Source of the DNA: Glycera tridactyla
Lineage: Eukaryota
DNA: 64,000 nucleotides
Reading direction: 5' to 3'
Assembly (NCBI GenBank): GCA_965644265.1
Contig: OZ286461.1
Location: 96,472,001-96,536,000, forward strand
Of this stretch, positions 15 to 58,868 are shown piece after piece (position 1 is the stretch's first letter; each line of letters begins with the position of its first letter). The notes beneath the pieces are model-generated. The model was not told the DNA's origin and ran no database searches. It saw nothing but the letters and a program-made list of their open reading frames with translations. The position numbers were made by a program, and so were the translations under genes.

Positions 15-2015
15 AATTACAAGAGGGATCCGTGCTGGCAGGACCAATATTGACTGCATTCATTGAGTCATCACAGGGTGGCACCACAATAGGACCCCTA
101 GTGACTACGACTGCTAGTGCCATCGTACAAGCCCTCACGGAACTAGGACCTGGTACTTGTCTCGAGCAGAATGAACTTGATCTCCTCGCCAGTGCACTCA
201 GTGGAATTGCCTCCTTGTAAGTTTTGATAATTCTTTGGCTATATCTGCCTCATAAATGCAGTTTCAATTTTCCATAGAGGACTGTACAGGCCACCATTGA
301 TTACTCAGATATGTTGGACGAGACATTTATAGATATTGTTCACTGTAAAATACTATCCTCATTATCGTCTACCATGGTTTTTGTGATCTCCGTTGGAGAT
401 CATTATGCTACCACCTCTCTGCTCGAAATGCTTTCTAACTTCGCTGATTCTGAATCTGGAGGCTGATATAATCAAACGAATATTGATCGGTTCTGTATAA
501 AAGGATCGAATGATCTAATCTAACACAATTTCAGGATGATTTATCGATCTGATTAATGACAATTTGAGGAAATGTAGCGATTACGTAATGGGCATTTCGC
601 CGTACATTCGTTTTTGTTGCCGATTACCGAAGCACACAGATACGACGGCTCAGAGATGTATAGCTACCCACAAATAGTAAATGCCTGTCAATCAAGTTCT
701 TTGGCCACGCCCACATCGGAAAATTAGTGCCTCTTGTTCACAACTCATTACCAGGTTTCATGGAGAAATACTAAACATACTGTTGGAATGATCATCTGTA
801 TTGATTCCTCGACATCCGACTGTCTTATCTGTATGCATAAATCTCGAAAAAAATCCGTTTTTGTTGATATGATCATTTGTAGGGGGGTAAAGTAGTGCTT
901 CTTGTTCACACCTCATTACCAGGTTTGATGGATCACTGCGCCGATTTATGAATGAAGTTGTAGATAGTGTGCGTAAAACCAGCCAATCAGAGATCAGCAC
1001 TCGCACGAATGACGTTGATTCGACGAATGCTTCAGTTTGTGATGGAACATGGCCCAAATTCCTGAAGGAGCGATTGTCATTATCACCGGAGATCACTCAG
1101 CGCAGCTTTGCGCTCTTGTTATAGGCAGGTGCCCTGGTACAACTTTGTATCAAGCAGATCCTATATGAAATTCACGAAGGGTTGGTTCTGTGTACCTTGG
1201 CAATATATACAATTGTACAAATGATTTGGTTCGTGATACGTAACATGGAACCTAACTTTCATTTTATTCTGACTTTGGATATTCATGTTTAGAGATCATG
1301 AGTTCTGGTCTAGCAGTTAGTGATGAACTTTCTGGAAATGACTGATTGTTGCAGGTTGGAGACAACGCTGACAGATATGCTGCAGCTTCTAGAGACCTCG
1401 GACCTGCCGGCAGATCTGGAGCTGGATATTGAAGTTGCTTTATCTGTGAGGAACACCCTCCGCGGTGTCATCAGTGAACTTCTGCAGAACCTTGGCGGAT
1501 CAATGATAAGTGTATTGGGTGAAGCCATCACAGATTTTGAGAACACCAACATCTTGGCTGCCATGTTGGAATTCCTTGGTGAGCATACAAATAAAACAAA
1601 GTACAACCTCGAGTTTCTCAATAGTGGCTCTTGACATTGTGAGTTTATTCACATTATTAGATCCAGCAGTTTTACCACACAATGATGCCAAACTAAGTTT
1701 GTTTACAATTTCTATCACTGTATTCTAAGTTGCACAACTGGTGCTAAACCGATTCATTTGAATCTAGACGTTTGTCCGTAAAGATCAGGTCTCTCTGTTA
1801 AGCAATGATCAGGAAGTTACTATATTGATGAATGATGCATTATCTTACCTAACGCAAGCTTTGTTGTAGTCTGTTGCTGAGAGTATGCTCGCCGTCATCC
1901 AAATTTCCAACACTGGCCCAGTATGGGAGTGACAATCCACCACGTCTGCAGCATGTTCTGCGTTTTTATGCCTCCGCCATATCATGGCGGATGGCATATA
2001 GTGTTTACCCTGTCA

Positions 2016-2047
<32 letters not shown>

Positions 2048-4580: not shown

Positions 4581-7500
4581 GTGAGTACCATCGAATCACA
4601 CACCTTCACTATTCTGAGAATGTAGCGAGTCCACATTCTGGGATTCACCCTAGGATTCACTGCCTGGCGTTATTAGGTTTGACAAGATTTCTTGTTGAAA
4701 TGATTGTCAATGTTTCTCTTATCAATTGTATTACAAGAATGTCCACTTGATATTTTCCCTTCGGTGCTCTTAACCATCGACCAGAGGATTGACATTTGAC
4801 GTTTCATCAAAGTGGTTATATTCATACTAATTTTCGATTCACTGCATTTCATCATTTCGATGACTTCGTGCAAAACTAGGCTAACTTCCTATAAATTCAA
4901 GCCTAGTTTTGCACTGAACCATCGATTTGCAGATGGCGGAATTCTATATAAAAACTATACAACCCTTCAATCATCGATCGAGAAACTGTCTCATGCTCAT
5001 TAAACTATTGCCTGTCTTGCCAATTTACTTTTATAATACTCTGAGAAGATGAATTGCTAAGAGAAGAATGAACAGATCAACTTTTCTAGGCGCTAACAGT
5101 GCTGCCATGCTGAGGTGACAAAGTACACAAAACCAGATCACTCCCTGATTCTGGGTGGCTTCATTTCAGATATTCGGTTATCGCCGGAGTTAGGAGAGAC
5201 GATTGTGGCGGATTTCATGACCGGTTTCCAAGCTGGTGAGGCCATTGTTTCCCTGGTGCCCACCCTGGCTGGCGGGATGATAGACGCTCTGGTTGATCTT
5301 GGGGATGGCAGATGTCTGACAGAGCAGGAACTCTCCCTCATCAGCGACACATTGATGCAAATACCAACACTGTAAGTGTCCTACTCGGGATGTATCCCTG
5401 TCCTGGGTATATCTATCTCACGGGTATCTATAATTGGTCTCTGTTTGATGTCTAGAATCATTGACATGCCATTATTCAACATTGATAAACCATTGAATTT
5501 TATCGAATACGCCTTGTTACTGATCAAAACAAGGTGTAAACAATATTGCTATACAAAATGCAATCTCTGCACTTGGACCATACCCCCATATATCAATGAA
5601 ACGGATCGCATGATCGAGTCGGATGAAGTCAATAAGGCTGCAGATCACCTATTCCAACTAGACATCATGAAGTTGAGACAAATCTCAACATCGTCACTGT
5701 ACTCACAAAAGTTGGTTCCCACTCATGAAACCAGTAGATAGACGATTGGATAGCAACTGACGTACGTTTAACGTAGCCACCCCTCATCTCGATTTAGGAC
5801 AGCGGTTTACGACACAATCTAGAAATGTTGAATAATGAACAGGTTAAATATTGTGAGGAACTGAACCGGCATCTCCTTCAAATGAGTACATGTTAGTACA
5901 TACTGAAAGTCCATATATGACAGTCGGGATTGTCCCCTTACTTTAGCCGGGATTATGGAGGAATCCCAAATGATCCCACCAATGCTCTTCGCACGGGCAT
6001 CATAATATAGAACCGATGGTGCCATTGAAACGTAGAACCACCCGCGATCTCGGAAGTCGCGGAACGATGCATGGTCCAGTCAAGAAAATACAATCGAATC
6101 TGTCTCCCGACCACTTCTGACCAGGGAGATAACCGATGATGGTTAGTCATAACATTTGGCGAGACTAAACTCTTCTTCCCTAGAAACGGAGTAGCATCTT
6201 CATAAATGGTGCTGGTTCGGAGTAGTACTCTTTGTATGTCGTTTGACGGTGTCCATCTGATCTCTGGTTACAGGCTGGGGCAAGTAGAGGCCTCTATGCT
6301 AGAGTTCCTGCAGACTGCACCTCTTCCCATCGAGGTGACCCTGGACGCCGAGCTGAGTCTGCAGGTGTCGGGTGTACTTCAGGGCGCCATCTCCGAGCTG
6401 ATTGCTCACCTTCAGCAACTTGTACCTGCCCTTGAAGATGCCATCATCAACGCTAACCCAGCAAATACCATCGGTGCTATCTTACAGTTTGCTGGTATGT
6501 GGATTGCAGGATACTTTGTCAAATCCATTTTCAATAAACCCTTCTTGGTCAAAAACAATGCTTTCTGACTGTCACCCTCTCGCGCAGACTCGTGTCCCAT
6601 GTTCTGAATTGATCGTTAATGAAATAGACTACCTTGGAAAATGTGGCTTAGGAGTCTTACAATCGATATTTGGTTGAAATAACCGATGACCTCAGATACA
6701 AATCTGAGTTATCAGTATTACCAATCTGCATTGTAGTTATTCTCTCTGCAGACAATTTATTCAGCAAACAAATAACTTGTTCTATTCTAGGAAAATGGCT
6801 GATACCTGAATGTAGGTTGGCCCCAACCTTATTGGCAGGATATTTGTTGCACGGCTAGAAAGTATTCTGAATATTGGTTTTGAAGAACTCATTCCAGTTT
6901 GAATCTTGCCAAGGAATAAGATTGTTTACCCCTCGGCAGTTTACAAATATTCAATGATGTGGAGCATAGATATTGAAGTTACATCGCGCATTTTGTCAGT
7001 GAACTGAGACCGCTATCCTTAAATAACCACAAATTTTGACTGGTTCGTTCACACCAAATGAAACATGTCTTTGTAAATGACCCAAATTTCACATCCCTCC
7101 CAGAGGGCAATCCTCGAACTTCTATTGGGAGTATATCAACTTTTTTCGCATATGTTTAGGGGAGTTGACGCCTCACTTGAGCCTGGATTTCCTGTTGAAT
7201 GAAGTATTGCCGGGTAAGTTTGGAGCAATTGAAGTTGGAATCAACTTTTTCTCCCTAGAAATAACATTAGTATCTATACATGTATCATACTCCAAATGTA
7301 CTGGTACTAATAGAAGTATCCTTGGGGCCTCTGTTCTGTGAATATGATTGGTAGTCACCTTATTTGTGAATATATCAATGGACTATGAAATAACATTCGG
7401 ATTCCGAATGCGAATGATCTTTAACCCCTTCTGAAACCATACATTGAGCACGGCCGCAATGGTCGTCAACATTCTACCTAAAGCGGTCTTTTTTATTTCA

Positions 7501-10500
7501 GTGTGCCCAGGTAGACGTTCTCGACAGAGGATTTTAGTGCTTCCATGATAATTGAGCTGAAATGAGTGAATTTCGTACATATAAATCACATTTTGTAGGC
7601 ATTTTTCCTCCAGATTTGTCGGTGTTGCTGGAGACTGCCCTTTCTGAGATCAGCCTACCGGTGGCGGGAGCTACGCTGGTCACGGAGCTTGCTGCTGACG
7701 AGTTCCTGGCGCTCTCCGCAAGCATCTTTGATGTCCTCCAATATATGATCGAGGCTACTGGCCTAGACTTCTGCTCCGATGGATTACCCAGAAATGAAGT
7801 CACACTAGTAGTTGGTGAGTGGATTTGACTGAATTTAGTTCACTTCGCAGGTGGGTGGGACAATCCTCGTGAAGTAGTGTCTTGAGCTAAACAATGTCCT
7901 GAACATTTGCTTAGGTTAGCAAAATATGTGCTAGTGGTATATATGGGCTGGTGGTATATATGGGCTGGTGGTATATATGGGCTGGTGGTATATATGGGCT
8001 GGTGGTATATATGGGCTGGTGGTATATATGGACTGGTGGTATATATGGACTGGCTTGAAAAAATGTTTTATTTGCAGGTGTGGTCGAGAATCTGCTGACC
8101 TTCCCATTTCAAGGACCTCTGCACACGACGATCCTGAACCTGTTGGACTCACAGGACCTGGATGAAGCTACCCTGGAGCAGGTTCACCAAATCCTCGAAC
8201 TGAGAATGAGCCAGATGGATAATCTTATCTCGCCATTCTTCGCTGAACGAGTCGAAACTCTGGAGGGAATTCTCCCTGGTGAGTTGAAACTGGTGTTGTG
8301 ATAGGATATCAATCTGATCTGAAAACTCATCGCTACTCAAGTTACGGTATATCGAAAACTGTGCATTCAAACTTGCTATAACGCCCTTCTCCAAATTACT
8401 GACCAGAAGTACTGCACCTATTATCTGCCACAAAAGATATTTTTCGCCCTGTTCGACATTAAGTTTTATGCTGGCAGAATTCCATCCCGATAATTTCAAT
8501 CATGTGAAAACTTTTCGTATTTAATATTCAATAGATCCGTTTAATATTCAACAATCCATAAGTCGGGTATATGTACCCTCTGTAATGTGGGAACCTGTCT
8601 CTTTTACTGTTTTACCAGCTGGGATTTGTATTTTAGGATTACTCATTGAATTTGTCATCTCACATACAATTAGCTATAATTTGATTGTTTGGTAGTTAAG
8701 ATTTACTGGAGGGGGGGGGGGGGCGACTCACTTGCGAGTACATCCCTTACCGAGCACAAAGGTATTAGAATCCTTCACATCCTTGCATCTCTTCAGGAGT
8801 TGGGATTATACAAGGGTGATTGTTGGCCCCGTTGTTTTCAGAGCTGTCGTCGGCTGCCAGCGAGGCCGGGTCGCTGCTGGCGGAGTGCATGTCTCTCTTC
8901 CTGGAGGGCCGCACAGCCGAGGACCTTGTCGGCACCGCCGCAAACAGCATGTACAATGTCCTCGTCTCACTCGCCCCAGGGGACTGTCTCCCCGATAACC
9001 AAGTCGCACTTCTGGAGGAGGCACTGGAAGGAATTCCGGACTTGTGAGTTACCGTATGCTATCAAATCTGTTCCAAAAAGAAATTTCAAAATGGAAAAAT
9101 TTGAATCAAAATATATCAAATATGTGGACTAGTAGGTTTCGGAGCCTTCAGACCACCCTTGGTTGTGGTCTTTGTATGCGGGGGACCATTGTAGATGTGA
9201 TACTGTGAGAAATACTATCGCGGTCACTGCTCGGGGTGACTTTTGAAGTATATACTGTCGAACCTGCTAGACCTCTTAAACAATCTATCACGAGTATTAT
9301 TTGAGATTCTTGATAATCTTTCGGTGTCCTGTGAAACATGGAAAGATGAGATGTATAGTAACGCTAATCATATCATGCTGGATAGTTGGCAAGTTCGTTC
9401 GATCTGTTTCTCGGTAGGTTGGAAGAAGTGTACACGTCTCTGGTTGAGTTGGTAGACACGGAGGTTCTACCGTCTGAATTGCAGCTGGCCGGTGATCTGA
9501 ACGCATTGCTGATGAACACGTTACGCGGGGCTGTCTTTGAACTCGTACAAAACCTGGAAATAACAATACCCGACTTACGGGAAGCTCTCCTCCAGGGCAA
9601 TCATCCTAACGTGATCAACATCCTTCTGCAGTTCTTCGGTAAGTAATGCTCATAGGCGTTTTATTCAGATTTTGAACACCGGATGTATCAGTATTGATTG
9701 AACTGCTGCGGAATCGTAGAATCAGAAGCGCGGGAAGGTCCTCTAGCGGTGCCAATATTAACTGATAGTTTCCAAGAGTGACACTTGTGTCCACCCTTGC
9801 AAATTGCAAGTCGATACCACGGGAGATGGTGTTTACTATCAATAATAGATGTTCACGGTCACCGAACCCTGTAGAGTAATGCTAATGTTAGATATCTTGA
9901 AGATTATCTATATTTTTCATGTTACCTAAAGAATTGGAGAACCTTTCGAACGTAAGCTTTGTATTCTCTCAACTTTGAAACCGATTGCCCGAGATCCTAG
10001 TCTTTTTGGCTCACACTGGCCATAATAGAATAGGTGAAAACCTTTTGGATCCGATCAAAACTGTTCAACTTTTCCTTAGTGCTAAAAGATAGGCCAATCT
10101 TGACAAGACCAGCAAAATTCCATTGCAAAAGAGCTACACTTATATTAGCATCCGTCGACGTTGCATATCATTGTCATATTACACAATGAGAACTGGAATA
10201 AACCCCACCAGCAGAATTAATAACTCGTGTTGGCAATTGAAGTGAAACCGTCTAAAGGGTAATTGTAAGCTTCTGAATCTAGAAATTGCATATCTGTGAT
10301 GAAATGAACCATTTAACTTGTTATGAGTGTGTTGCTTTGTGTTTAGGTCAACTGACACCAAACATGAACATAGACTTCCTCTTGGAACTTCTCCCACCAG
10401 ATGTCGAGTTCGGTAAGTAAATCACAACTGATCACATTGATCGAGTGCTTCCTGAACTCTACATGTCCATGTACGATCCCCACGTCCTCCCATATTTTCA

Positions 10501-13500
10501 TCTGACAAAACATAAAGGACTCCTTGAGTGTTGGTGAATTTCATCAATTTCCACCTTCCGCTGGGGACCCGGCAGGAGGAGTCATGAATAATCCCACCCA
10601 CGCACATCTGGCGCTTGTGTGGTTGGTTAGGATGGTTCTTGTTGAACATCAATCGACCAACAAAGCACACTATCCACCCACCCGCCAAGCAACCCACTAG
10701 CCACCCACCAATCAACCAAGCTACCCGCCACCCTCCCAATCACTTCTTCCATGTGATACGTGTACATCTTGTCTGCAGATTTGAGTGCGCTGCTTGACGC
10801 CGCCATAGCTGAGATGGGGCTTCCGGTTCCTGAGGCGACGCTTATGACGGACCTGAGCTTGGAGCAGATGACTGACCTGGCCTCTACAGTGACTGGCCTT
10901 ACTGAGTACCTGGTCGATGCCTCCGGTCTAGAAATGTGTGAAGTGGGAATATCCAGCAACGTCGTCACCTTAGTCTTCGGTGAGACCCGCCCCTGATATT
11001 TAGTTTCAATATTCTGACTTCATCTAAGGGATGCAATTGGGGGTCAGCGTTAATAGCCTTCCTAATATTAAATCTCTATTGGTCAATTCCAAGGTAGCAA
11101 CATATGGCACGAGCCCTCGAGTTTTAAATGACCTGATATGGGGTCTCACTGGGTTTTAGACACTGTTTATTCTTCGCCGAACGCGTAGCTATGGTTGTGC
11201 CAAAGAACCTTACCGTAACTCAAAGATCGTAACGGGCTCGGGTAAATTTCAGTCCATGTGGAGCAAAACTTGAAATCTGGAAAACCTGATTGAACTAGTC
11301 TGTCTTGCTACTCATTTCTCAAGACCTCTCGCTTTCTAAGCCCGAGAAGGCATCAAACTCTTGTAAGTCGAAGGTGACAAGACCAGGTCAGATACGATGA
11401 TGACTCCTCACTCACTATGTGATGAATTCTCGGTTTGCAGGTGCTGTACTGAATCTGTTGACTCTACCCTTCCACGGTCCCCTCTACCATACAATCCTCA
11501 CCTTGTTAGACGACCAGGGGCTGGATGCTGCCACCCTGGACCAGGTTCATCAGTTGCTAGACACACGTCTCACACAGATGGACACACTAATGGGCGAGAC
11601 CTTCGCTGATGACCTTGAACTTCTGCAACAAGTGCTACCAGGTGGGTCAAGATACACTGCTACCCGAAGGGCCATGGACTTTTGAACAGTAGCAGCCTCC
11701 GAGTATAGCTCGAATGTACTATGGAATGCTACCAATCGTCAAGGGTACAACTGTTCATGACTTAATACTTGGTGTATGTATCTACCAGATAATAGTCAGT
11801 CTTTTGCAAACTGTCGATATATATTATCTAAATAATTCATTCACCTTGCCCATTCTAAATTCATTAGCACTGCCATCTTGAATGACTTATCGTCGCAGAT
11901 TAGCGCCTGGGTACTTCCGGTTGCTATCAACACCATATACTCCAAACATTTACCAGCTACTTTCACTGACAACCTTCATAGTTTCATCTTGTGTTTGTTG
12001 AACTGACGCTTGAAAGGGACGGAACATGAAGCTCTCAGACCAGGTTCACTGCATACGTAATCTTCTAGGTCAATACAAGACATTTAAAGTAAGCAAACGA
12101 AACCATTGAGAGCGACCAATCGCGTCCCAATATTCAAGCAGCACCGCAACTATGTGGTATTAAGGAAATATCAGAAGTAAATTTGTGGCTTCTTTGCAGG
12201 GCTGGAGCAGGGAATGGAGCTAACAGGAAGTGCCTTAGTTGAAATCATTGGTCAGTACCAGTCTGGCGAGACGGTGGCAGAATTTGTTAGCTCACTGACT
12301 ACTGGCCTGGCTGATGGCCTACTCCACCTGGGAGCTGGTACATGTCTACTAGAAGACGAGATGACGCTACTGGACACTACTCTCGCTGCCATACCAGCCC
12401 TGTAAGTAGGAATTATCTTAATACATGACACTTGAGTTGATAATTGCTGGCCATCGCAATGTAGGTCACTAAGAATTTGATGGTTATTCCTACTTTTCCA
12501 CCGTTCTGCCTCCCTATAGTAGTTTATGGACTGCACGAGGGGTGGTTGCAATCTGGATGTTCTGTTTCCTGCATTCATCTGGAACGCACGATGTATGTTT
12601 AATCATGTCTTCGGATACCACCCTTTGCCAATCCACCGGGACACATACACCAACCACGGGATACGAACATCCTGCGGTGTCTCATACCTTCTCTCGTATT
12701 TAAACTCCTAGATGCACCAATCGATTATTTGCAGGTTGGGTAGTGCGCATGTGTCGTTATTGGAGCTGATCGAGAGCGAGGCTGAGACTGAGTTGGTTCT
12801 ATCAGCTGAGGTCGGTCTACAGGTGACTAACGCCTTGCAGGGGGCCGTGTATCAGCTTACTCAGGACCTGGAGTTGCTCATCCCCATCCTTCGAGATGCT
12901 CTCATAACGGCAGATCATAGCAACATCCTAGAATCCATCATCACATTCCTAGGTACGCTGATAATACACTGGATTCCTTACAAAACTAGGCACAAATCTG
13001 GGCACAACAAATCCGATTTCAACAACACTTGTACAGTTGTTTTCAGGGCCGTCGGCTTCCTTCTGAATGATACACTCTCGAGTAATCTGCTGATGGCAGT
13101 GCAGGTAGACGTATATTTGACTGCCACTTCCACTTGGTCTTTCTCGATAGTTTTGTGTTTAGGGTCTGAATTTTTGAAATGAATTCTGACATATCGATAC
13201 GAAAGGTGGTTGTAGTTTTGTATTGTTTGTTTAGGTCAAATGCTACCACAACTCAACTTGGAGACCCTCTTGGGAAACCTACCCACTTTTCCGATATCAG
13301 CGGAGGATATTCTGTCTGGTGAGTATAGAACAATAAGTAGTGGTATCCTAATATTTTCCCTTCAGTAAACTGACAAATCCTAGAGCGGAACGAAATTGCC
13401 GATCGATTGCTCCGAGAGACGAAATGTAAATTTCAGACACTGGCGACGTGAGGGTTTTTAGTGACCCCTTTCCGAGCACACTGCATGGGCGTCACCTGTG

Positions 13501-28500: not shown

Positions 28501-31500
28501 AAGCTATGGAACCCGTCGGAAACGTGCTACCGCGTGAGTGAAGATTCTTCTGTCTTTGCTGTTTGCTGAACTTTGATTTATTGCTCATATAAGACCCGCC
28601 AAGAAATGAGTCCAAGGTCTATTGATGGCAGCCACCAATGAGCGTGGGTCATTTTCTTTGAAGTGTTGCCATCGGGAATGATGTGGCCTAGATGTAGCAT
28701 CATCCCTTCTCTTTTTCTCAATAGTCGTGTGTGTGTGGGGGGTTGAGTGAAAACATACCTTCAAATTCTCTGTCATCTGTCTAGGCAATTTCTACCAAAA
28801 TTACAATCACCATGGTTTCTTTTTCCTCACCTCTTTTCTATCCCTCTAAGCTCTTATTTCTTCAGCAAAATGGTCTCAGGTGTAGGTAGCTAACGGTTTG
28901 CCTGTTGCAGATATTGTCGCTAAGCAAAAAGCAGGTACCAGGCACACCAGTTCTGGTTTACTAGGGCTGCGACTAGGTTACTAGGAAGTGTGATGGCATT
29001 GTATTGCTAGCTTTGGGATACTATAATTGTAAAGCTGGTTTGAAGTTGGCAGTTTTTTTAAATGGCCGCTACGGTTGAGTATTCTCCAAACCTAATGCTT
29101 TTCAATGTGTCAAGTACTGCACTTTGCAAAATGAGCATCGCTATCAGGCTAATGTTAGCTTCCACCCAGTCACATAGTTAGATATGCCATCAAGGTTTAT
29201 TATGTTTTGTGCAGAGTAGGTAGAGGTGTCTGAACTGTCAGCTACTCCTACTTGACAACCTTTCAGGTTGCCCATCATCTAGTGTTCAGGGTTTGTAGAG
29301 GAGAGAACAGCTAGCTTTCATTAACCAGGAATCCATGGCATACATAATCTTAGGGTTGATACAAGCCGTTAAACCGCAAACAATCCTTAATGCCAGCTAA
29401 CGATTTATATTTGTACACATGCCGGACAGTATGGATCAATTGTATTGGTAGGCGTGTGGTTCGATGTTCCAATAGCACTAGTTTAGCAATTCTTAATCCT
29501 GTACACCTAATGACCCGATTACTGACTCACACCCATCACCAGCTCAGCAACGCTATATCCAACCAGTCATATTTGTTACTGTTTTCAGAGATTGAGTTGG
29601 CCGTGGAGTTAGCTGAGGGAACTCTAGGACAGATGCTGTCCTTCTACCAGACCCTGCCAACAGTGGAGGACTTGGTCAACACTCAGACCAGTCTGACAAT
29701 ACAAGCCATCATACAGCTGGGTTCTGGACGCTGTCTGACACAGGAAGAAATCACCCCACTCAGTATTCTACTCTCTAGTATCCCAACATTGTAAGTAAGC
29801 TGGTGGAATAAGTAGTTTGTGATCTTACACTCAGAGCTACAAGCTAAGCATTACGTGGCTTGAAACATGGCATCAAATCCAATGCAAACTCAGGTCAACT
29901 GATAGAAGTAAATACCTCTTTCACATGAAGATTGGCTGGTCAGCCTCTCTCCATGGCAAATAATTTGAATTCGGCCTGAAGTGTCCTCTGTCAATTAGGT
30001 GATATTCCCTCACGTCATTTTGTTTCTTTTGATGAATTCAGTCTTCAAAACATTCATTTGATCAGGTACACCTTAATCTCGGAAATAAGATCTTTAAGAA
30101 ATTCAACTGCACTGAATATCAATTTATCGTGATGTACATGAATATCACCACTGGAGAGGACAGGATCTTCTGTGGGATCTTCACAGCAATACCACGCATC
30201 TGCAAAGTGTAATCGCGTAATCACCTGCCTGATCTTGTAATATTGTTTTGCCGCTGTAGGCTGGAGGAGGCAAGCAGTACGTTGGCGGAGCTACTGGAGA
30301 CTGCCGACCTGCCTGGAGAGATATTGCTGCCTGGTGATCTCGGCATGGACGTCGGGGTGGCCCTGGGAGCAGCTGTAGATGAACTGGTCGGAGATCTAAC
30401 GATGATGGTATCAGGGTTGAATGTGGCCCTTGAAAGCCAGGACCGAGTCGGCGTCTGCCTTGCTATGGAAACATTCCTAAGTATGCTCATCCTAAATTGT
30501 GAACGTGAATACATTACCAAAATTACTTCAAGATAATAGAAGACTATGAATATTGATGGCATAATTGACACTAGTCTGTCTAGTCCTAATGTGACTCTTA
30601 CGCAGATTGGCTGCGCGAATGCAATGGAATGAAATCGGTACATCCACTTTAGGTGGGCTGAGTATCTGAATATGGTCTGACAATCGCTGAAAGTTTCTTA
30701 CGAATTCGTCAAGAAAATTCGCGAATCGTGGCATAAGGGTGTGAAACCTACTCGTCCCCTTTCGATTCGACATTACTGATTCGAACTAGTGTTTGCGTCG
30801 TGGAGAGGGTTGGTGCTGCGCGATGGACATGCTGCCATCTACTGTGAGAAGTGTAAACTATCCTCTCTTCAATCACCTAAGCTCATCCACATTCATAATA
30901 TGCCTAGAACAATTATAATCCTATCAATGGGGCATTTGTCCGATCCAGATATGTACGCCTTGGTTGGACGACAGTGTGAGGTTTGTAGTATTCTGATCTC
31001 CGTATGAGATGCCTAGTTATTGCCCTTTATTCACCAATCATCAATGAACAATTGATCTGATCATTTGGAATATGGATGATACTCTTATAACCAGAGTTCT
31101 ATATACCGAATGTAGTGAATGGAACATGTTTCAGGTGAACTCTCTCCCAATATGGATCTGGATTCTCTTCTGGAGGAATTCCCGCCAGATATTGTCTCAG
31201 GTAAGCACTCGCATCAATTCAGTCGTGAAGTAGCATGCTCAAATGGGACCGGTATCGTCCAATACTCGACAATTTTTCTTGACAACAGTATCAGCTCACA
31301 CCTATCTGCCTGCCCGTCATGCCACCGCGATTTCTGCCCCAAATCAATGTATTTCCCCACCCCTTCTGATCCTGATTTGATCCTGATTTGATCCATCTCA
31401 TCTCCCGTTGTGGTTTCATCGTTTTCGGCTAGGTTGAGAAGGATTTCCTTGCAACATTCGCCGGTGGTGCGCCAGGGTTGTGTTGCACCGCCATCCACAT

Positions 31501-34500
31501 CCACCACTATTGTATCAGGTCTCTTGATTTCTAGAAATCCTGAGGAATATCCCCGCATCGGTAAATGAACATCTGCATGATATTTTCTATACTTCAAGCC
31601 AAACGCATCAGACACTTTTCCCAGGGTTTTAATCATCTTTCAAAACTCCGCCATGTTGTGGGATTGAATTATCGACATTTCTCTGAATTTTCAGACTTGC
31701 CTGAGCTTCTGGCGTCTGCCATCAGTGAGATCGGGCTACCAGCTGTGGAGACGCCAGTGACGGAGATGACGGAGGAGGAACGCCTGCAGATGGTGACCGC
31801 TGTCAGCCAGCTGGTGGGTCATGTGATGGATGCAGCTGGACTTGCCTACTGCCAGGATGCCCTGCCCCTGAATTACATCACCCTGGTCATGGGTAAGCAA
31901 TAATTCACAAATTCGGATCTCGAATGGGTGTCAGATTTGTAAATCTAATCACATTCGACCCTAGAATTGAGCCCGACTAAAAAACATAGCTATGCATATG
32001 CATAATGGATATATTCTGAGTATATTGCTTTACTCAAGGTAGGTTGAAGTACGCAACCCTTAGCTGTGTGAGTTCAGAATTCACCCATCGAAATACCATC
32101 AATCGTGATCGTGATAGCATTTTATTCAGTAAAGAACCCTTTTACAAAGGTCACCTGTCTAGAAGTCGGCTATTGGCGCGACCGAGGGTGGTCTTTGTAG
32201 GCAGGTACAACTGTACCTATACTAAGCGTGAATGCTCTATGCATGTGATTTAACTCTCCTGGCCAGATATGCAGGAGAGGGTTGGCTATATTTGATAAAG
32301 GTTCGCAGCTCACTATGTACCACTCTTCTCTTTCAATGCAGGTGATCTTGCCAATATTCTAACGATGCCCTTCCACCCTCTTCTGCACCATACCGTCATG
32401 ACTCTGCTGGATTCCCAGGGCTTGAACGAGGCCACCCTGGAACAGGTTCATCAGGTCCTTGTAATGAAGATGGACGACTTTGACACTATATCAACTGACG
32501 CATTTGCAGAGCATCTGGAGGCAATCGAGGGCGTTATTGGACGTGAGTATATTCTAATATCGTTTTTATACATCACCTGCATTCTATATTACTGGCGGAT
32601 TTACCGAACTTATCGGCTGTGAATCGGGTCAGGCCACAACACTCTTGCCACGAAGTGTTCGAAATTGATTTGGTGTCAGGGTACATGTTATGAGTGGTCT
32701 CCCGTGGAAATCCCATTTCTAGTAGGCGTGCTCATTTCAATCATATGTGGATTAGCGACAAGAACATACACATCAGGTTTGAACTTCATACCGGTCATTT
32801 CCAATCTGAAATGGTGCATTCCCACACCATTGCTGCGACTGATTTTCCGTGGAATTCGACTTCACATGTCGAAACATTTCTTAGTTGACCCCAATGCTGC
32901 GAATTTCTAGATTCATTGTTTTCAAACGATCATGATCGCCATATCGCTATGATTTCCCATGCAAACCATGGCCGATAACGTCGGCATATTGATCAATTGA
33001 TGCGATGGAAAAAAATCAATCCTCATGAAAACTTGGAAATCACGTCCAATAAAGCGTGGATTCACATTCCACTAATTCCTTTTTCCATGCATGGAGACCT
33101 TGTTATATATGGATTAGAGTTGCTCGGAAAATTCAAAAGATCACATGTTCACTCCAATTCTTATCCACTGAGTTTGGATTCGAATCTCCTATGTTTAATG
33201 TTTACAGCGCTGGAGTTGAGTATAGAGTTGACGGCGTCGGACCTGGTTGGATTCATGTCGGCCTACCGGCTCGCACCCTCGGTCTCTGAGCTGATCCCAC
33301 CCATGGCACAAGGCATGATTCAAACCCTCACACAACTAGGCTCAGGGCGCTGTCTAACCGAAGCCGAAATCACTTCCCTCAGTGCTCTACTCACCGGTAT
33401 ACCGGATATGTAAGTGACATGAAACTTCTAAAATCCTACTAAACTCCGTCGAATCCAAACTTGGCGGGTACGTTTCAGACGCGAACTTTGCCCTTTCTTG
33501 CCAGATTAAAATTTTAATGGCACGAATGTATGGAGGTCTTCCGACGATTATCGAATGTCTCAGTGACTCTGTATGCTTTTGAAGTGGGTGGTCGTGGGAT
33601 TATTTAGTGGGGTACAGGTATAAGGATGTGAGGTAGAGTAGCGGACAAGGTGAGGTATTGACAGACATGTAGATAAAGATGTGCATTTGCTAGCTATAGT
33701 AATTGGTGGACAAGCCCCGAGTCGGCCTCAAAAGTATGATTTGTGATATGATTTATATGCTCCCCGCTCTTGCCTAACTAATTGGAAAAAATCCAGCTCT
33801 TGCCCATTGCACTACCCCATCCTCCACCATTGATGCTGCCACCATTTAGTTTGTAATGGGTTTATTCAGATTCGTGATGTGCAAAGGCTATATTTGGGGA
33901 CAACAAAATGAATGAGGGTTGTGAGAAACGGCAACTACTCCTCAATTTGTGCAGACTTGGTTATAGATCTAAATGTTGAATCAATCTTTCGATTCGCCGT
34001 CTTGTACTTCCGGTATGCGCGCTACCTACAGGGAGAACTTTCGTAGATGAACACAACATGACCTACATGATCCCGTGACTCCCGACTAATCCATCATATT
34101 TTGTAGATTGGCAGAAGTAAACGTTGCCTTGATCGAAGAGATTAGTTTGAGTGGATTACCCGCATCACTGATGCTATCCTCGGAGCTGGAAAGCCAGTTG
34201 ATGGCACTTCTGGAAGCAGTCGTCAATACACTTGTTGGAGACCTGGAAGTGATCGTACCTGAACTCAATGAGGCACTCCTTGGTTCCAACGTCATTGGTA
34301 TCTCTAATATTGTAATAAACTTGATAGGTAGGTTTACTACGAGATCACATGAAAACACTAATCATTCACAGCAAGTATTTTGCTGCAGATATTACGGGGA
34401 ATTCAACATTGTACTGATCATACTGCCGACCTTTCTAATCCTATTATAAATTTCAGGGGATGGGAATGAGTAGGATAGTGAATGGTGAAAGCTGTCAAAT

Positions 34501-37500
34501 ACTGCGTGGTATATGCATGCACATGCTAGCTCATGGTATCTCCCAGAACGTCCCACTCACAAGGATAGCATTTCTGAAATTCAGTGGCATTAAAATATCA
34601 TAGACCAACTGCTTCAACTTGGGACATATATATCTTTGAAAGGTTTTCGGGGTGAGCGCAGTAGAACATAAGGTATCAGTGGGTGGAACAAATTACTTGC
34701 TTGATCTTCAATATACCATATGTGTCTGAGGCCTGTGGAGTAGATATCTCTATAGATCCCTCCAGATATTTCATGAAAGTGTGAATTACAGGACTTTAGC
34801 TGAACAAGATAATTGACTAGGTTTCAAGTGGCCGACCTTACTTTGTAGGTGATCTTCAGTCTCAACTGGACCTGGAGACCTTACTTGAGGAACTAACACC
34901 CGAGTCAGGTGAGTGATGGAATCTCCTCGTTTGGTATAAGGACAGTCGACCTGTATCTTTGATGTCGGTGATCAATTGGCATGGAACCTGCCATTGTTGC
35001 GATCCGGTCGATTTTCTACGAAAGGCTATCTATCCTTCACCTCTGCTCAGAAGTGCTTCAGCAATGGTGGTGCGGGTCTAGATGTCTTATTGGCGAGTGC
35101 GCTATGGATTTAGTCTTGTCAATCTTGAGGTCAGTCATAGTGGGAACTATTGCTTCCTGTCGGCTTCATAAAGTTGTTTCCAGGAGACTGCGATACATAC
35201 TTTCCTACATGAGAAATGATATTACCATTCACATCACTTTGTGCATATATGATTGGTTTCGTAATATTCAAACTGCTGTTACTTTCTCAATATAGCATGC
35301 CAATGTATTCGTGAATATTATCAGCACATTAAGCAATAAGATTGAAATTCGGCATTCTTGTTAATACATGCTGGTACAGTAAATATGAGTCAAGTGTATC
35401 AGTTATTGTTCTGACTTCATATCTGCTTGATAAGAGGCATTAGGTATACCAATCCATTATCTTTCATACCGATGCAAGTACTTAAAGAAAGTAATTGTAA
35501 TTAATTCACTTTTGTAGAGTTAGAAGTGCAGTTGGCTGCGGCTATAGAGGAGATAGGTTTACCAGTACCGAGTGGTACCCCGATGTTATATCTGACGGAC
35601 ACTCAACGTGCTTCTACCGTTAGCCTCATGAATGACTTGATACGCTACATCATCCAGCACTCTGAACAGGACTTCTGTGAGCAGGGCCTCCCAAGCAGCC
35701 TGCTCTCTCTCGTCTTAGGTAAGTGCTATATATCATGAATCCTGGTGTTTTTACAGGCGTATAACGGGTGCTTTTTGCTGAATGTGGGATCCGTCTCTTG
35801 CATAGTAGGTCGACAATAAGATAGTGTTGTGGTTTGAAGCGGTCCGGTCAGATCATACTTCCTGATTTTCCGTCATTGTAGTATTCACAACCATTTACCT
35901 GTATTACTCAACCGCCTGTCTCTGCTACTTATTTTGGATTTCCAGGTGGGGTTGCCAGGTTCAATTAGTTTTGCTACTTTATGTATCCCCCTCCTATAAC
36001 TTAAATTGGCCTCAGTGGTCCCTGACCGCATTCCCAATTACAGTACTTTGAATTATGGAGACAAGCCACTGGCCTACTCGTCTCGTAGGGAATTGTGGCC
36101 ACTTGTACATGAATATACATGAAAGCCCAAGATTTTGTTTGCAGGTGAATTGGATGCCTTCCTTACCTTCCCCTTCCATGGACCACTGAACTCTGCCATC
36201 CTGAGTTTGTTAGATAACGAGGGATTAGATGAAGCAACCCTGGCACAGGTACACCAGCTGCTAGAACTGAGGGTGCAACAGATGGACGATCTGCTCGACC
36301 AAGCCTTCTCTGACGAAATAGCCGAGTTAGAAGGAATTCTGCCTGGTGAGTTTCTCGATCAGTTGATCAGCCATTGTCAGAGCATCCGTGAGTATCTGAA
36401 CGATGCAAATCCATACGCCCAATTTAAGTTATTCCACCTGATCGTTAGTACTTTCGCCATATAGAAATCTACCGATATTGCATGATGCTTGAAACTGCGT
36501 ATTCACTACTGAAGCAGTGACTGAATCTTATTTTGGTTTTGATTCGGGGCATCTCCAGCTTCTTGTGGGCAAACACTCTCAATAAGCTGACTAGGCCAAA
36601 TGAGGTCTTGAGAGAACCGAATAGCCGTGATATTTTCCACGATACCAGACACGACTCGTCCATCTGCTTTAGCTTTTGGCTTGGGTTTATCAGAGCTAGT
36701 TCACTTCTGCGCCGAATCAGTATTAACAGCATGGGCTTCCGATTCTAATGTGTGAAGTGAATGGATGGCGGTGGTGTTGCAGATGTGGAATTGGCGTCGG
36801 GTCTTGCTGGTTCCTACCTAGCAGAGTACGTCGCGACGTATTTGAGTGGTACTCCAGTAGAGGACGTCGCCATTATGTTTGCTTCTGGCAAGTTTGAGGC
36901 CCTGCTGCAGCTCGGAAGTGGTAGCTGTGTCTCTGACTCCGAGATCAGCCTGATAGAAACGACCCTCACTCGCATACCCAGTCTGTGAGTAGTAGCCATG
37001 CAGAGAAGATACTAGTAGCTGCCTAAAGAAATCCCTATTAGATAAATACCCTTGTGGTCATACCCCTCCACATATCTCTTAACAGGCGCGGGCCGCTCAT
37101 ACCTTTACATGTTGGTCCACCATGATGGCCTTTGAGAATTAAATTCCATTGGTTCAAAAATCTGCTCCGATCTGATAAGATATAAACAAAACTTATCTAT
37201 CCATGGAAGTCATTGGTCATTCCCTAGCCAATCGTAATCATTGGACATCTGAACCTTTGCTGATTCTGATGTGGCAAGCTGAAGCATTTATGCCTATCAA
37301 CTATTGTTATTCACATGACTGGAGTTTTGTGGGGCGAGGACCACATGGAAAGTGTAATCAGGTCATGAACAGCACTCACATGGCCAACCATAGGCTTACG
37401 CACAATTTTGGCAGATTTTATTTAGCCCATGGAGTGTCTACATAAGCAGTCTTTGGCAATCCAAATCTGGTGTGTACGTGAGCTCTCCTGTGGTCATTGA

Positions 37501-39803
37501 AATGTGAAATGACAACAGGTTTTACCAGCACCAGTGGCATATTTTGCCAAAACATATGTAGATAGTATGTCCCTCTTGCAACCTATCACAATAGCAGGTT
37601 CGATTTGGTTGATGAAAGTATCATATCATCTTTTCAATGCTATTTATTGTGTGAAAAGATGAGTTCGAACCAGTCAAATATCAACTGAACCTTGCAGGCT
37701 GGAGGAGGCGTATATGAGTTTGACGGATCTGATCGAGACAGAGGTACTTCCGGCGGAAATGACGTTTTCAGCCGAGTTGAACACTCAGGTGATGAACGCA
37801 CTGCGTGGAGCCAGTATCGAGCTGTCACAGGACCTGGAGACGGCAATACCAGCACTCAGTCAAGCCTTGCTTACAGAAACCGACTCTGCTTACCACTGCT
37901 GTAACGTAATGCTGAACCTTATCAGTACGTATCTCTTACCATATTATGCCACACTTGCATGATTTTCTGCGATAATAGTATGATATCACTTGAAATACTC
38001 CTCGGTTGGGAAGTATTGCGGGACTGTTTTTGCTGTTTGAGCTTACTGGTACCCTAGCTTCTATAAATATATGAAACTGTGCTGATGGATAGGGTACAAG
38101 TGAGTATGGAAGGTGAACAAAATGGCGGATGCGTGTTGTCAAGTCATATCTCACGAAGTAGGGCGAAGATTATAACAAGAACAAGAGAATTGATGAGGGG
38201 AAAAAGTTTGACTGTGGCATAAATGCAAGAACTGGCACCATGAGTGGTCCCTCGTGATATCACTTCCCCTGCAATCCTTCGGTTGCGATATCATCGATCA
38301 GACGACCCAGGTTGGAGATTCTTGCTATAATCGCAAAATTCATCCTTTCCAAATTATCTTAGGTGGAAATGTTACTGCTATGACTGCTGAGATTCTCAGC
38401 ATTGGTTGCTTCAGTGTTCATAGTGCTATTGGGATCAGCTTTACTATTCCGCAACGAACATGAAATGGTTGCGAGTGGGGAGAAATTCCTTGTAGGTCCC
38501 CAACAGGTGAAGAATGAAGACATCCCGAGACCGGTCATCTATCCGTAGATCAAGCCATAGAACATATGTCCCGATTACTGATCCCATGTTGTCTGTTCAC
38601 ATTTAAAAACTAAATTGTGAAAAAGTTTGCCAGGGTCGACTGCGAGCTCGTTGATCAATACGTGGATATGACAAGTACGTTTGACACAATCAACTTTTCC
38701 AATGTATATGTACATACCCATCTGAAAGTTTCAACGATGGTCCGACTGTACAGCCACATTGTTATCGAATAAGCATATCACTGAATGTTTCCGCTTTTCT
38801 AATTTCAGCTGAAATGATCCCTCATATGAATTTGGACTGGTTACTACAACTGATAGAAGAGGAAGAGGCAGAAAGCGAGCCCTCAGAGCCCGGTGTTATC
38901 TTACAAACGCTTGATATTAATGCTATCATCGAGCACATAATGTCGCTGGCCGGCGATGAATGTAAGTTGACTTGTCAAATCGAATTCAAGTCTTTTGTAA
39001 GGAATTCTCAATATAAAGCCAGCCAGTGCTTTTCATGTAGAATCATTGAAATCCCATGTGCCTATCTGGTGCCTGTCCACAAGCATGCACTCTGAAACGA
39101 TTTTTTTATGAAAGCCAGTGTGAATTTACTGTAGGAGCAGTAATTTTTGAACTGATCCAAATGTGACTTTATCATGAGGGTGTAAGATTACAGGAAACAT
39201 AGATATCCACCAGTGGTGCGAAAAATTTCCAAGAAGGCTGCCTGGCCATATTCCAGGATCCACTCAGAATCAATAGTTCCCAATGCTTTCTGTATGATAA
39301 TGTGATAGGCCTCCATATATAAGACATTTTGGTTGGAATTCTGGAGCATGTTTGGTTTTAGGATTGGTTAGAAATGCCTTGAATGACATCTCGATAGAGG
39401 ATATCCGCCAACTAATGCCTAATTTCCTCATGATTAGTGACAATCTTTACTGTGTTCTACTGTTGGCCTCGATATGGTTTACTTATTATTTTGAAAAAAG
39501 GCCCCGTACTTGCATTACAGGTATGTGTGGATGACTTATTTAATTTTTTCTGAATTTGCAGTGGCTGCGATGCCCGACATGGATGTACCCCCAACAGCCT
39601 TCTTCATTAGTTTCCTAGACAGCCTGATCTACCGCATGCACGAGCTGGGCATCTCCAACTGGGACGTGATCGGCATGTTGTTGGACTCGCTTCAGTACGC
39701 CTTCGCCAACTTCCCCGAGCAGGACGTGTCCATACTGCAGAATGCCTTGCGTGAAGTCCAGCTGACCAGAGTCTTGAAACGGCGCCGGGGTCTCATCCAC
39801 TGA
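15..39803 (+). CDS. 5'-partial 54-exon gene encoding a giant (>3250 aa) acidic, Leu-rich, nearly Lys-free tandem-repeat protein of unknown family (10 full five-exon cassettes + A/B/C' + terminal exon)
   Basis: All 54 exons are bounded by AG/GT, phases chain 1-2-1-1-1 with no junction stop, exon lengths recur (202/221/201/201) and the translated exons are mutually homologous. Summed length is 9752 nt, +1 nt from an upstream exon = 3251 codons including TGA at 39801-39803. Confidence 0.93.
1963..2535 (+). mobile_element. Non-autonomous Helentron-type element (HINE / DINE-1-like) in intron B1-C1
   Basis: 5' TTTTT-ATGCCTCCGCCAT-atc-ATGGCGGATGGCAT palindrome; (GT)13 microsatellite at 2016-2041; ~2.8 tandem 147-bp units (starts 2055, 2202, 2349); 3' subTIR GGAGGCAT (2501-2508, reverse complement of 1968-1975); stem-loop GTGTCC-tat-GGACAC; end CTTTCTAGTT. 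This layout matches the published HINE architecture. Confidence 0.75.
5170..8278 (+). CDS. Cassette 2 exons: A2 5170-5371, B2 6274-6494, C2 7160-7213, D2 7614-7814, E2 8078-8278
   Basis: Lengths 202/221/54/201/201; motifs LGDGRCL, GELTPHLSL, GLDFCSDGLP, PFQGPLH; AG/GT boundaries in the expected phases. Confidence 0.93.
7934..8052. repeat. 17-bp minisatellite (GTGGTATATATGGGCTG)x7
   Basis: Five perfect copies and two copies with a G>A variant, counted directly. Confidence 0.95.
8842..11641 (+). CDS. Cassette 3 exons: A3 8842-9043, B3 9418-9638, C3 10347-10412, D3 10779-10979, E3 11441-11641
   Basis: Lengths 202/221/66/201/201; LAPGDCL, GQLTPNMNI, GLEMCEVG, PFHGPLYH. Confidence 0.93.
12200..14824 (+). 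CDS. Cassette 4 exons: A4 12200-12401, B4 12735-12952, C4 13235-13318, D4 13976-14176, E4 14624-14824
   Basis: Lengths 202/218 (one-codon deletion)/84/201/201; LGAGTCL, GQMLPQLNL, GLNYCQQGLP, PFHGPLHN. Confidence 0.93.
15488..17782 (+). CDS. Cassette 5 exons: A5 15488-15689, B5 16218-16438, C5 16792-16860, D5 17083-17283, E5 17582-17782
   Basis: Lengths 202/221/69/201/201; LGSGECL, GEMVPNLNLESLL (AAG acceptor), LEWCETGVP, PFHGVLNN. Confidence 0.91.
18756..21317 (+). CDS. Cassette 6 exons: A6 18756-18957, B6 19529-19749, C6 20159-20224, D6 20487-20687, E6 21117-21317
   Basis: Lengths 202/221/66/201/201; LGAGSCM, GDIGPQLNLESLL, GLDYCDDTLP, PFHGPLHN. Confidence 0.93.
21915..24740 (+). CDS. Cassette 7 exons: A7 21915-22116, B7 22547-22767, C7 23107-23181, D7 23933-24133, E7 24540-24740
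   Basis: Lengths 202/221/75/201/201; LGDGACL, AEITPSLNLESLL, GIAYCEDGLP, PFHGPLHS. Confidence 0.93.
25562..28533 (+). CDS. Cassette 8 exons: A8 25562-25763, B8 26322-26542, C8 27162-27227, D8 27570-27770, E8 28333-28533
   Basis: Lengths 202/221/66/201/201; VGTGRCL, LSMESLLQTFPP, NLVYCTDGLP, PFHGPLNS. Confidence 0.92.
26043..26128. mobile_element. Terminal fragment of a Tc1/mariner (pogo-like) MITE
   Basis: Sub-repeats (ctataaaagccacc / tatataaaggccacc) ending GGTGGCCTTCATAGACGGGTTTGACTG + TA, i.e. a CAGTCAAACC... TIR next to TA. No partner TIR found. Confidence 0.45.
27829..28040 (+). repeat. Dispersed repeat family R1, copy in intron D8-E8
   Basis: Aligns by eye with 29090-29385, 40593-40870 and 51445-51580 (atagttagatatgcca...gtgtctg.actgtcagc...cttga.aa.ctttcaggtt.ccca...gaccaggaacac...gggttgatac). 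Confidence 0.8.
29090..29385 (+). repeat. Dispersed repeat family R1, copy in intron E8-A9
   Basis: Same core as the other copies; shares an extra ~85-bp 5' extension (ctaatgct...catcaggct..gttagctt) with the 40593 copy. Confidence 0.8.
29589..32542 (+). CDS. Cassette 9 exons: A9 29589-29790, B9 30260-30480, C9 31135-31200, D9 31695-31892, E9 32342-32542
   Basis: Lengths 202/221/66/198 (one-codon deletion)/201; LGSGRCL, MDLDSLLEEFPP, GLAYCQDALP, PFHPLLHH. Confidence 0.93.
31214..31560 (-). pseudogene. Possible decayed APE-type endonuclease fragment of a LINE, antisense in intron C9-D9
   Basis: 140-aa ORF with RPDTIVV...ENDETTTGDEM...GSEGVGKYI...CELILL, loosely resembling the PDII..TETWL...RGGGVG.YI...E pattern. 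Catalytic motifs are not intact. Confidence 0.3.
32127..32215. mobile_element. Short degenerate MITE related to the 26043-26128 fragment
   Basis: Left CAGTAAAGAACCCTTTTACAAAGGTCACC is an imperfect inverted repeat of right GGTGGTCTTTGTAGGCAGGTACAACTG + TA. Confidence 0.4.
33208..36345 (+). CDS. Cassette 10 exons: A10 33208-33409, B10 34107-34327, C10 34849-34908, D10 35518-35718, E10 36145-36345
   Basis: Lengths 202/221/60/201/201; LGSGRCL, LDLETLLEELTP, QDFCEQGLP, PFHGPLNS. Confidence 0.93.
36783..38961 (+). CDS. Final partial cassette: A11 36783-36984, B11 37698-37924, extended C11 38809-38961
   Basis: A11 202 nt (LGSGSCV); B11 227 nt (two extra codons, ends YHCCNVMLNLI); C11 starts like other C exons (EMIPHMNLDWLL), continues EEEEAESEPSEP plus a helical segment and ends at a strong T|GTAAGT donor. 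Confidence 0.87.
39562..39803 (+). CDS. Terminal coding exon (unique C-terminal tail, ends ...LTRVLKRRRGLIH*)
   Basis: Pyrimidine tract + GCAG acceptor, phase-1 compatible with C11, same acidic/Leu composition, TGA followed by AATAAA 72 nt downstream. Confidence 0.82.
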
Positions 39804-39874: not shown

Positions 39875-39880
39875 AATAAA
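39875..39880 (+). promoter_or_regulatory. Probable polyadenylation signal of the repeat-protein gene
   Basis: AATAAA 72 nt after the stop codon, followed by GT/T-rich sequence (ctgttatgtctc). Confidence 0.65.
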
Positions 39881-45400: not shown

Positions 45401-45436
45401 CAAAATAACGGAACCGCCACAATTGAACTTGACAGA
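42432..45436. mobile_element. Cluster of related MITE/foldback-like units with ~30-bp imperfect terminal inverted repeats
   Basis: Unit 42432-42805 and unit 43933-44354 each start TCTGTCAAG...GGCG(A/G)GTACGTTT and end GAAACGTACCCGCCACATTTGGATTTGACAGA. Partial copies at ~43655-43890 and ~44360-44525; inverted copy at ~45080-45436. No TSD seen. Confidence 0.55.
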
Positions 45437-46198: not shown

Positions 46199-46404
46199 NN
46201 NNNNNNNNNNNNNNNNNNNNNNNNNNNNNNNNNNNNNNNNNNNNNNNNNNNNNNNNNNNNNNNNNNNNNNNNNNNNNNNNNNNNNNNNNNNNNNNNNNNN
46301 NNNNNNNNNNNNNNNNNNNNNNNNNNNNNNNNNNNNNNNNNNNNNNNNNNNNNNNNNNNNNNNNNNNNNNNNNNNNNNNNNNNNNNNNNNNNNNNNNNNN
46401 NNNN
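46199..46404. other. Assembly gap (206 N)
   Basis: Run of n. Confidence 0.99.
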
Positions 46405-54619: not shown

Positions 54620-54860
54620 TGTCCGTCTATCTGCCTCTTTGTCTGTTTCTGTCTCTGTCTCTGCCACTGTCTCCGTCTCTACCAGTCTCTCTGTTCGTCT
54701 CTGTCTGTCTGTCTGTCTCTGTCTTTGTCACTTTCTCTGTTTATCTGTCTGGTTGTCTGTCTGTCAGTCTCTCTCTGTCTCTGTCCGTCTGTCTGTCTGT
54801 CTCTCTCGGTTCTGTCTGTCAGTCTGTCTCTCTTTCTCTCTTACTCTCTACCCCTCTCTT
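54620..54860. repeat. Degenerate (TCTG)n/(CT)n microsatellite
   Basis: Direct inspection. Confidence 0.9.
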
Positions 54861-57777: not shown

Positions 57778-58081
57778 NNNNNNNNNNNNNNNNNNNNNNN
57801 NNNNNNNNNNNNNNNNNNNNNNNNNNNNNNNNNNNNNNNNNNNNNNNNNNNNNNNNNNNNNNNNNNNNNNNNNNNNNNNNNNNNNNNNNNNNNNNNNNNN
57901 NNNNNNNNNNNNNNNNNNNNNNNNNNNNNNNNNNNNNNNNNNNNNNNNNNNNNNNNNNNNNNNNNNNNNNNNNNNNNNNNNNNNNNNNNNNNNNNNNNNN
58001 NNNNNNNNNNNNNNNNNNNNNNNNNNNNNNNNNNNNNNNNNNNNNNNNNNNNNNNNNNNNNNNNNNNNNNNNNNNNNNNNN
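57778..58081. other. Assembly gap (304 N)
   Basis: Run of n. Confidence 0.99.
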
Positions 58082-58554: not shown

Positions 58555-58868
58555 NNNNNNNNNNNNNNNNNNNNNNNNNNNNNNNNNNNNNNNNNNNNNN
58601 NNNNNNNNNNNNNNNNNNNNNNNNNNNNNNNNNNNNNNNNNNNNNNNNNNNNNNNNNNNNNNNNNNNNNNNNNNNNNNNNNNNNNNNNNNNNNNNNNNNN
58701 NNNNNNNNNNNNNNNNNNNNNNNNNNNNNNNNNNNNNNNNNNNNNNNNNNNNNNNNNNNNNNNNNNNNNNNNNNNNNNNNNNNNNNNNNNNNNNNNNNNN
58801 NNNNNNNNNNNNNNNNNNNNNNNNNNNNNNNNNNNNNNNNNNNNNNNNNNNNNNNNNNNNNNNNNNNN
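58555..58868. other. Assembly gap (314 N)
   Basis: Run of n. Confidence 0.99.

Follow-up and report, generated by a model that had tools for sequence, protein, structure and literature searches.

Genes for giant repeat proteins in which an exon cassette has been duplicated in tandem are of a familiar kind. Helical bundles strung in arrays are a typical feature of cytoskeletal linkers, and the spectrin repeat is a three-helix unit of ~106 aa. In the nematode polyprotein allergens, basic cleavage sites separate the units of the ABA-1 type, each of about 130 aa.

Proteins that exclude lysine form another point of reference. A lysine desert is defined operationally as a continuous lysine-free run of at least 150 residues (Szulc et al., quoted in PMC13696103), and the deserts quoted in the same article reach 398 aa in Slx5, 521 aa in UBQLN2, and 950 aa in BAG6 (PMC13696103). 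Among the 200 longest human lysine deserts, 41% were assigned to the plasma membrane, 24% to the extracellular matrix, and 15-16% each to the cytosol and the nucleus; the authors suggest the avoidance of lysine-linked modification such as cross-linking, and the lysine question is left explicitly open for non-cytosolic proteins (PMC10169902).

Here we compare with these systems a locus of Glycera tridactyla contained in a stretch of 64,000 nt (contig OZ286461.1, positions 96,472,001 to 96,536,000), hereafter called the window, to which all coordinates refer. The window contains the 3' part of a single, real protein-coding animal gene, and we consider it very probable that this one gene encodes a helical repeat family that has escaped recognition.

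Structure of the gene

On the + strand, positions 15..39803 comprise 54 exons with AG at every acceptor and GT at every donor, and the splice dinucleotides in the window are intact throughout (107/107). When spliced, these exons give 9,740 nt in a single open frame of 3,245 codons whose sole stop is terminal (TGA, 39801-39803), and an AATAAA polyadenylation-signal consensus is found on the same strand at 39875..39880, 72 nt past the stop codon. The window starts inside the intron that precedes the first A exon, and therefore the gene extends upstream of it. The first-pass annotation had described one gene of 54 exons encoding more than 3250 aa. The single gene agrees with the 53 phase-matched junctions and the one terminal stop followed by AATAAA, and the product is indeed giant, although the part encoded within the window amounts to 3,245 residues, about 346 kDa.

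The exons follow the rhythm A (202 nt), B (221 nt), C (54-84 nt), D (201 nt), and E (201 nt), which is repeated ten times, and the ten complete cassettes are followed by a partial one composed of A, B, C', and a terminal exon. Searches of the window by tblastn and phmmer, seeded with the translations of four ORFs of a single cassette, recovered 11 copies of A, 11 of B, 10 of D, and 10 of E, all on the + strand and in the strict order A-B-D-E. These copies are in register, with a pyrimidine-rich tract and AG upstream, a GT donor downstream, and a constant codon position; the donors are mostly GTAAGT or GTGAGT, and that of the last B exon is the GT at 37925, 6 nt off the normalised boundary. Exon C is present in 10/10 complete cassettes, where both its ends are in phase 1 and the motif P-x-L-N-L-E-x-L-L is shared. 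The starts of successive cassettes lie 3.16-5.16 kb apart and the repeat unit measures 292-301 aa (~297), so that the strict rhythm of one cassette every 3.2-5.2 kb described previously holds. The fixed exon lengths given with it need adjustment in some cassettes, as B measures 224, 218, and 227 nt in cassettes 0, 3, and 10 (the last being the partial one), and D measures 198 nt in cassette 8.

With the exons listed in the order A, B, C, D, and E, and all on the + strand, cassette 0 (15..4580) occupies 15-216, 1355-1578, 2975-3049, 3664-3864, and 4380-4580; cassette 1 (5170..8278) occupies 5170-5371, 6274-6494, 7160-7213, 7614-7814, and 8078-8278; and cassette 2 (8842..11641) occupies 8842-9043, 9418-9638, 10347-10412, 10779-10979, and 11441-11641. 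They are followed by cassette 3 (12200..14824) at 12200-12401, 12735-12952, 13235-13318, 13976-14176, and 14624-14824, cassette 4 (15488..17782) at 15488-15689, 16218-16438, 16792-16860, 17083-17283, and 17582-17782, and cassette 5 (18756..21317) at 18756-18957, 19529-19749, 20159-20224, 20487-20687, and 21117-21317. Cassette 6 (21915..24740) is formed by 21915-22116, 22547-22767, 23107-23181, 23933-24133, and 24540-24740, and cassette 7 (25562..28533) by 25562-25763, 26322-26542, 27174-27227, 27570-27770, and 28333-28533. The exons of cassette 8 (29589..32542) lie at 29589-29790, 30260-30480, 31135-31200, 31695-31892, and 32342-32542, and those of cassette 9 (33208..36345) at 33208-33409, 34107-34327, 34849-34908, 35518-35718, and 36145-36345. 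Finally, the last, partial cassette (36783..39803) consists of A at 36783-36984, B at 37698-37924, C' at 38809-38961, and the terminal exon at 39562-39803. Its C' exon measures 153 nt and carries an acidic extension. The terminal exon aligns on exon D in the MAFFT alignment of the repeats, but without the Cys, and the comparison of the two with hhalign gave no significant match. The C-terminal end of the protein reads ...KRRRGLIH.

The 53 introns measure 222-1,396 nt, and they are in phase 2 at A|B and in phase 1 at every other junction. Both the intron lengths and the splice signals are of animal type. The introns on either side of C, D, E, and whole cassettes are in phase 1, so that the frame would survive the skipping of any one of them. 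In the B-C intron of cassette 0, a 147-bp unit is repeated 2.4 times (2054-2403, 90% match) and adjoins a (CA/TG)n tract, which helps explain why this intron and this cassette are the longest. A 17-bp minisatellite (7924-8053, 7.6 copies, 97% match) ends 25 nt before the exon E acceptor of cassette 1.

Sequence downstream of the gene

No Pfam-recognisable ORF was found in 40000-64000. Repeats involving 42486-42810, 43576-44114, 44044-44529, and 45251-45405 include direct ones, 76-85% identical, and inverted ones, 71-78% complementary. Spread over 42486-45405, they give rise to short minus-strand ORFs that resemble one another, and they probably represent an unclassified repeat family. Three runs of N are present (46199-46404, 57778-58081, and 58555-58868). 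The sequence is C-rich at 50-58 kb (GC skew about -0.12), a CT-rich low-complexity block occupies 54630-54859, and a (TG)39 tract lies at 58907-58984. The end of the window is occupied by a satellite of 104-bp units (62329-64000) with about 16 head-to-tail copies that are 97-99% identical and continue off the window end; a degenerate copy starts at 62225.

Divergence of the cassettes

The repeats are 31-46% identical to each other, and this identity declines steadily with distance in the array, from 42% between neighbours to 31% between the two ends, which is the pattern that stepwise tandem duplication would give. Between repeats, pS is saturated (0.61-0.77) and pN ranges from 0.34 to 0.48. 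The equivalent introns are dissimilar, as noted previously: in global alignment, equivalent D-E introns are as identical as shuffled controls, and no pair of equivalent introns was retrieved in the intron-to-intron blastn search, whose five non-self match rows correspond to three distinct pairs, one of them between neighbouring introns. Together, the saturated pS, the lower pN, and the unalignable introns indicate old duplications maintained by purifying selection, in agreement with the first-pass annotation. The sole sizeable similarity between introns is a 222-nt element (73% identity) common to the neighbouring introns D7-E7 and E7-A8 (approximately 27828-28047 and 29173-29383), which is probably a dispersed repeat.

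Searches for related families

Pfam searches with 57 exon translations retrieved nothing above threshold, only scattered single matches and sub-threshold matches to DEK_C (PF08766). The latter cover residues ~11-46 of exon E, with 5 of 15 members at E <= 0.1 and scores of 14-20.6 bits, the best of them (20.6 bits) being below the Pfam gathering cut-off of 24.8. The corresponding PDB chain of DEK, 1q1v, matched the exon E profile with E 0.4-0.9, and it was absent from the Foldseek search of the PDB with the exon E model, an isolated 66-aa fragment for which all matches had E > 5. The likeness to the DEK C-terminal domain is at most one of helix-loop-helix sequence pattern.

Profile searches of the PDB with five exon alignments returned only designed helical repeats and noise, and one of these designed repeat proteins was retrieved through eight summed 3-bit matches. 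Foldseek comparisons are uninformative for helical fragments as short as the exon B and exon E models; that of exon B gave only matches with E >= 1 against the AFDB clusters and nothing significant against the ESM Atlas. In the ESM Atlas feature search, the best scores (0.78 and 0.68) fell within the range of shuffled proteins. Internal sub-repeats relating A to D or B to E were ruled out, as hhalign probabilities between exon classes were <= 1.3. Polynoidin, the photoprotein of scale worms, was considered as a very large protein and was set aside, as a preprint gives about 65 kDa and proposes peroxidasin as its candidate. Neither the PFHGPL motif of exon E nor the accession of the metagenome described below had a match in the literature.

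Relatives were found in a single sample. A profile of the ten E exons, the only exon class used for this search, was compared with 1.84 billion representative proteins and matched five proteins only, of 72-105 aa, all of which are exon-sized ORFs; no long protein was matched in this library, whose coverage of annotated invertebrates is uncalibrated. The contigs fetched for three of these five proteins come from one metagenome (JAAUYI01 / GCA_013332675.1, also ERZ23486739), and a search of the JGI metagenome collection with a subset of the exon E alignment gave matches solely in the same assembly, JAAUYI01. One of its contigs, of 2.2 kb (L005), contains D, E, and A, followed by the beginning of B. 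These exons are 42-63% identical to those of the window and retain both Cys, and their acceptors and donors agree with those of the window in codon position and phase. This layout shows that the cassette architecture also occurs in at least one further organism, known only from a single metagenome. A second contig of that sample (L004, 360-626) encodes a divergent exon E homologue, protein P0005, which is 35% identical to the E exon of repeat 5, contains a 4-residue acidic insertion, and has PFEGPF in place of PFHGPL. Its sequence hints at a second, more distant paralogue or at another species in the same sample.

The proposal that no recognised family is involved is thus upheld by the negative results with Pfam, the PDB, the exon E profile against 1.84 billion proteins, and the ESM Atlas; the check by HMM and structure, run on exon pieces, ended without a significant match in Pfam, the PDB, or Foldseek. 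If expressed, the ~297-residue unit, which in these searches matches nothing but exon fragments of one relative, would be a new helical domain.

Amino acid composition

The 3,245 residues encoded within the window include 19.6% Leu, with a pI of 4.05 and a GRAVY of +0.46, and they comprise 509 D+E versus 43 K+R. Lysine occurs three times, first at residue 2652, and the lysine-free run, which takes in residues 1-2651 of the part encoded here, is thus at least 2,651 residues long. From the DNA composition about 97 Lys would be expected: for Lys, the positional base frequencies predict 2.98% and 0.09% is observed, whereas for Asn the prediction of 2.90% agrees with the observed 2.9%. Likewise, AAR codons number 3 and AAY codons 94, and pseudo-translated introns contain 3.7% Lys. 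Given the imbalance between AAR and AAY and the predicted 2.98%, the scarcity of lysine is not an effect of base composition, and the run is a lysine desert in the sense given above, being well over 150 residues long and unexplained by base composition. Arginine (1.2%) is also four-fold low, so that avoidance of positive charge accounts for part of the lysine deficit.

Another absence concerns N-x-S/T sequons, of which the 3,245 residues contain none. Full shuffles predict 13.3 +/- 3.3 and column-preserving shuffles 6.9 +/- 2.0, and none of the 2,000 column-preserving shuffles had zero sequons. The counts of D-x-S/T and Q-x-S/T are as expected from the column-preserving shuffle. The reverse motif S/T-x-N is depleted as well (2 versus 7.0, P 0.0045), and hence the sequon deficit may be partly structural instead of reflecting the avoidance of glycosylation. 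The bearing of the missing sequons on secretion is therefore suggestive and not decisive. K/R-K/R sites are restricted to residues 3238-3241 (KRRR), 4 residues from the C-terminus, a cluster that may be a putative convertase-type processing site.

Predicted structure and the limits of the repeat

Exons B and E were folded with AlphaFold2 as isolated fragments, using paralogous exons as the input alignment. The exon B model (pLDDT 92.7) has helices at residues 2-14, 25-58, and 62-72, and the exon E model (pLDDT 81.1) at 2-7, 13-23, and 29-64, the longest predicted helices thus measuring 34-36 residues. These predictions, made for isolated fragments of two of the five exon classes and spanning 139 of the ~297 residues, are consistent with the helical nature attributed to the protein previously. 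In addition, hydrophobicity averaged per alignment column has its periodicity maximum at 90-95 degrees per residue. Among the 19-residue windows of the 3,245 residues, judged by hydrophobicity and charge, there is no convincing transmembrane segment.

Of the 26 Cys, 21 fall in two invariant columns, one in exon A (G-x-G-x-C) and the other in exon D (aromatic-C). The spacing from the D-Cys to the next A-Cys is 129 residues in 10/10 cases, while that from A-Cys to D-Cys in the same cassette varies from 164 to 173 residues as a consequence of the variable length of exon C (18-28 aa, with a Pro-rich tail). The fixed spacing of 129, the constant size of exons D, E, A, and B, and the variability of C suggest that the bead probably consists of D-E-A-B and that exon C links one bead to the next, as opposed to the A-B-C-D-E unit adopted earlier, from which this division is displaced by half a unit. 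The rigid unit would measure about 275 aa, and each bead is predicted to be stapled by one disulfide between the Cys pair 129 residues apart. Instead, the two Cys could form a metal site with two conserved, although not invariant, His (PFHGPLH and QVH).

A possible role and its alternatives

The Cys pair in each bead, the missing sequons, the lack of a membrane span, the KRRR cluster, and the reported locations of human lysine deserts favour a secretory reading. From the sequence, we propose that the gene encodes a secreted or luminal, disulfide-stapled, polyanionic helical array of D-E-A-B beads, and we put the probability of this whole statement, including the scaffold function, at about 0.45. 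The protein, whose N-terminus lies upstream of the window, would pass through the secretory pathway, and its site of action would be extracellular or luminal, where the long chain of helical bundles would serve as a polyanionic scaffold. There would be selection for the absence of lysine amino groups, and hence of cross-linking or other lysine chemistry, with few tryptic sites, and selection for the absence of N-glycans. A further step, which we consider rather doubtful, would be to regard this chain of at least 346 kDa, selected to be chemically inert and uniformly negative, as the founding member of an undescribed, lineage-restricted family of extracellular helical domains. If true, the chain could stay un-cross-linked in a tanned, cross-linked, or protease-rich secretion, and the cuticle, tube, mucus, or egg coat would be candidate settings.

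The idea that the beads are amphipathic helical capsules or bundles that carry lipids or other hydrophobic ligands along an uncleaved chain would make use of the high leucine content, the positive GRAVY, the long predicted helices, and a column hydrophobicity close to helical periodicity. However, the high GRAVY largely results from the absence of Lys and Arg and not from an apolar excess, and neither Pfam matches to lipid-binding families nor dibasic sites between units were found, which makes a carrier of this kind improbable. The same holds for an intracellular giant scaffold, a linker similar to spectrin or talin in which the lysine desert would shield the chain from ubiquitylation and turnover. 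Lysine deserts have been experimentally tied to the avoidance of ubiquitylation (PMC13696103, PMC10169902), and the lack of a transmembrane segment would be in keeping with this location. Nevertheless, the two invariant Cys per repeat at fixed spacing, the complete absence of sequons, the lack of a Pfam match to spectrin or any other repeat family, and the low Arg, which known intracellular deserts keep, render it quite unlikely. Next to no credence can be given to the view that, in place of one functional gene, the cassettes are small individual genes or a repeat that is decaying and unexpressed: the 5' end does lie beyond the window and the case is argued from genomic sequence, but 9.7 kb of exons stay open over the phase-matched junctions with every splice dinucleotide intact, pN is well under the saturated pS, none of the cassettes shows its own start codon context, and a second organism retains the exon structure.

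Comparison with known systems

As read from its sequence, this gene is unlike other cassette-built giants in combining an unmatched ~297-residue unit with an extreme composition. With the nematode polyprotein allergens (ABA-1/NPA), it has in common the tandem arrangement of helix-rich units in one precursor; in contrast, its units are more than twice as long and no dibasic site lies between them, and none of the exon translations matched this family in Pfam-A (hmmscan, E <= 0.1 to 1). Similarly, the insect major allergen repeats of the Bla g 1 type share the repeated amphipathic helical units, but differ in unit length and composition, almost no Lys being present here, and no exon translation gave a Pfam match to them. 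The first-pass annotation had restricted its parallel with polyprotein carriers to architecture, and with no inter-repeat dibasic site and no Pfam match the parallel goes no further.

Spectrin-type giants (spectrin, plakins, and nesprins) resemble the present array in that helical bundles, whose helices measure about 30-36 residues, are arranged as beads on a string, and by analogy they are a plausible model for the mechanical behaviour of the chain. They differ from it in the length of the unit (292-301 aa here), the invariant Cys pairs, the absence of sequons, and the near absence of Lys; no exon translation had a Pfam match to the spectrin repeat, and the exon classes are without internal similarity.

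Finally, the protein shares with lysine-desert proteins a long lysine-free stretch beyond what base composition explains, and no link to the ubiquitin system is known for it. Here, the run of at least 2,651 residues is several times the 950 aa of BAG6, it extends over repeats whose folded parts are predicted to be helical and not disordered, and Arg does not replace Lys. Under the preferred reading of a secreted or luminal scaffold, this protein would therefore be a natural case in which to ask why long, seemingly folded, and possibly extracellular proteins exclude lysine.
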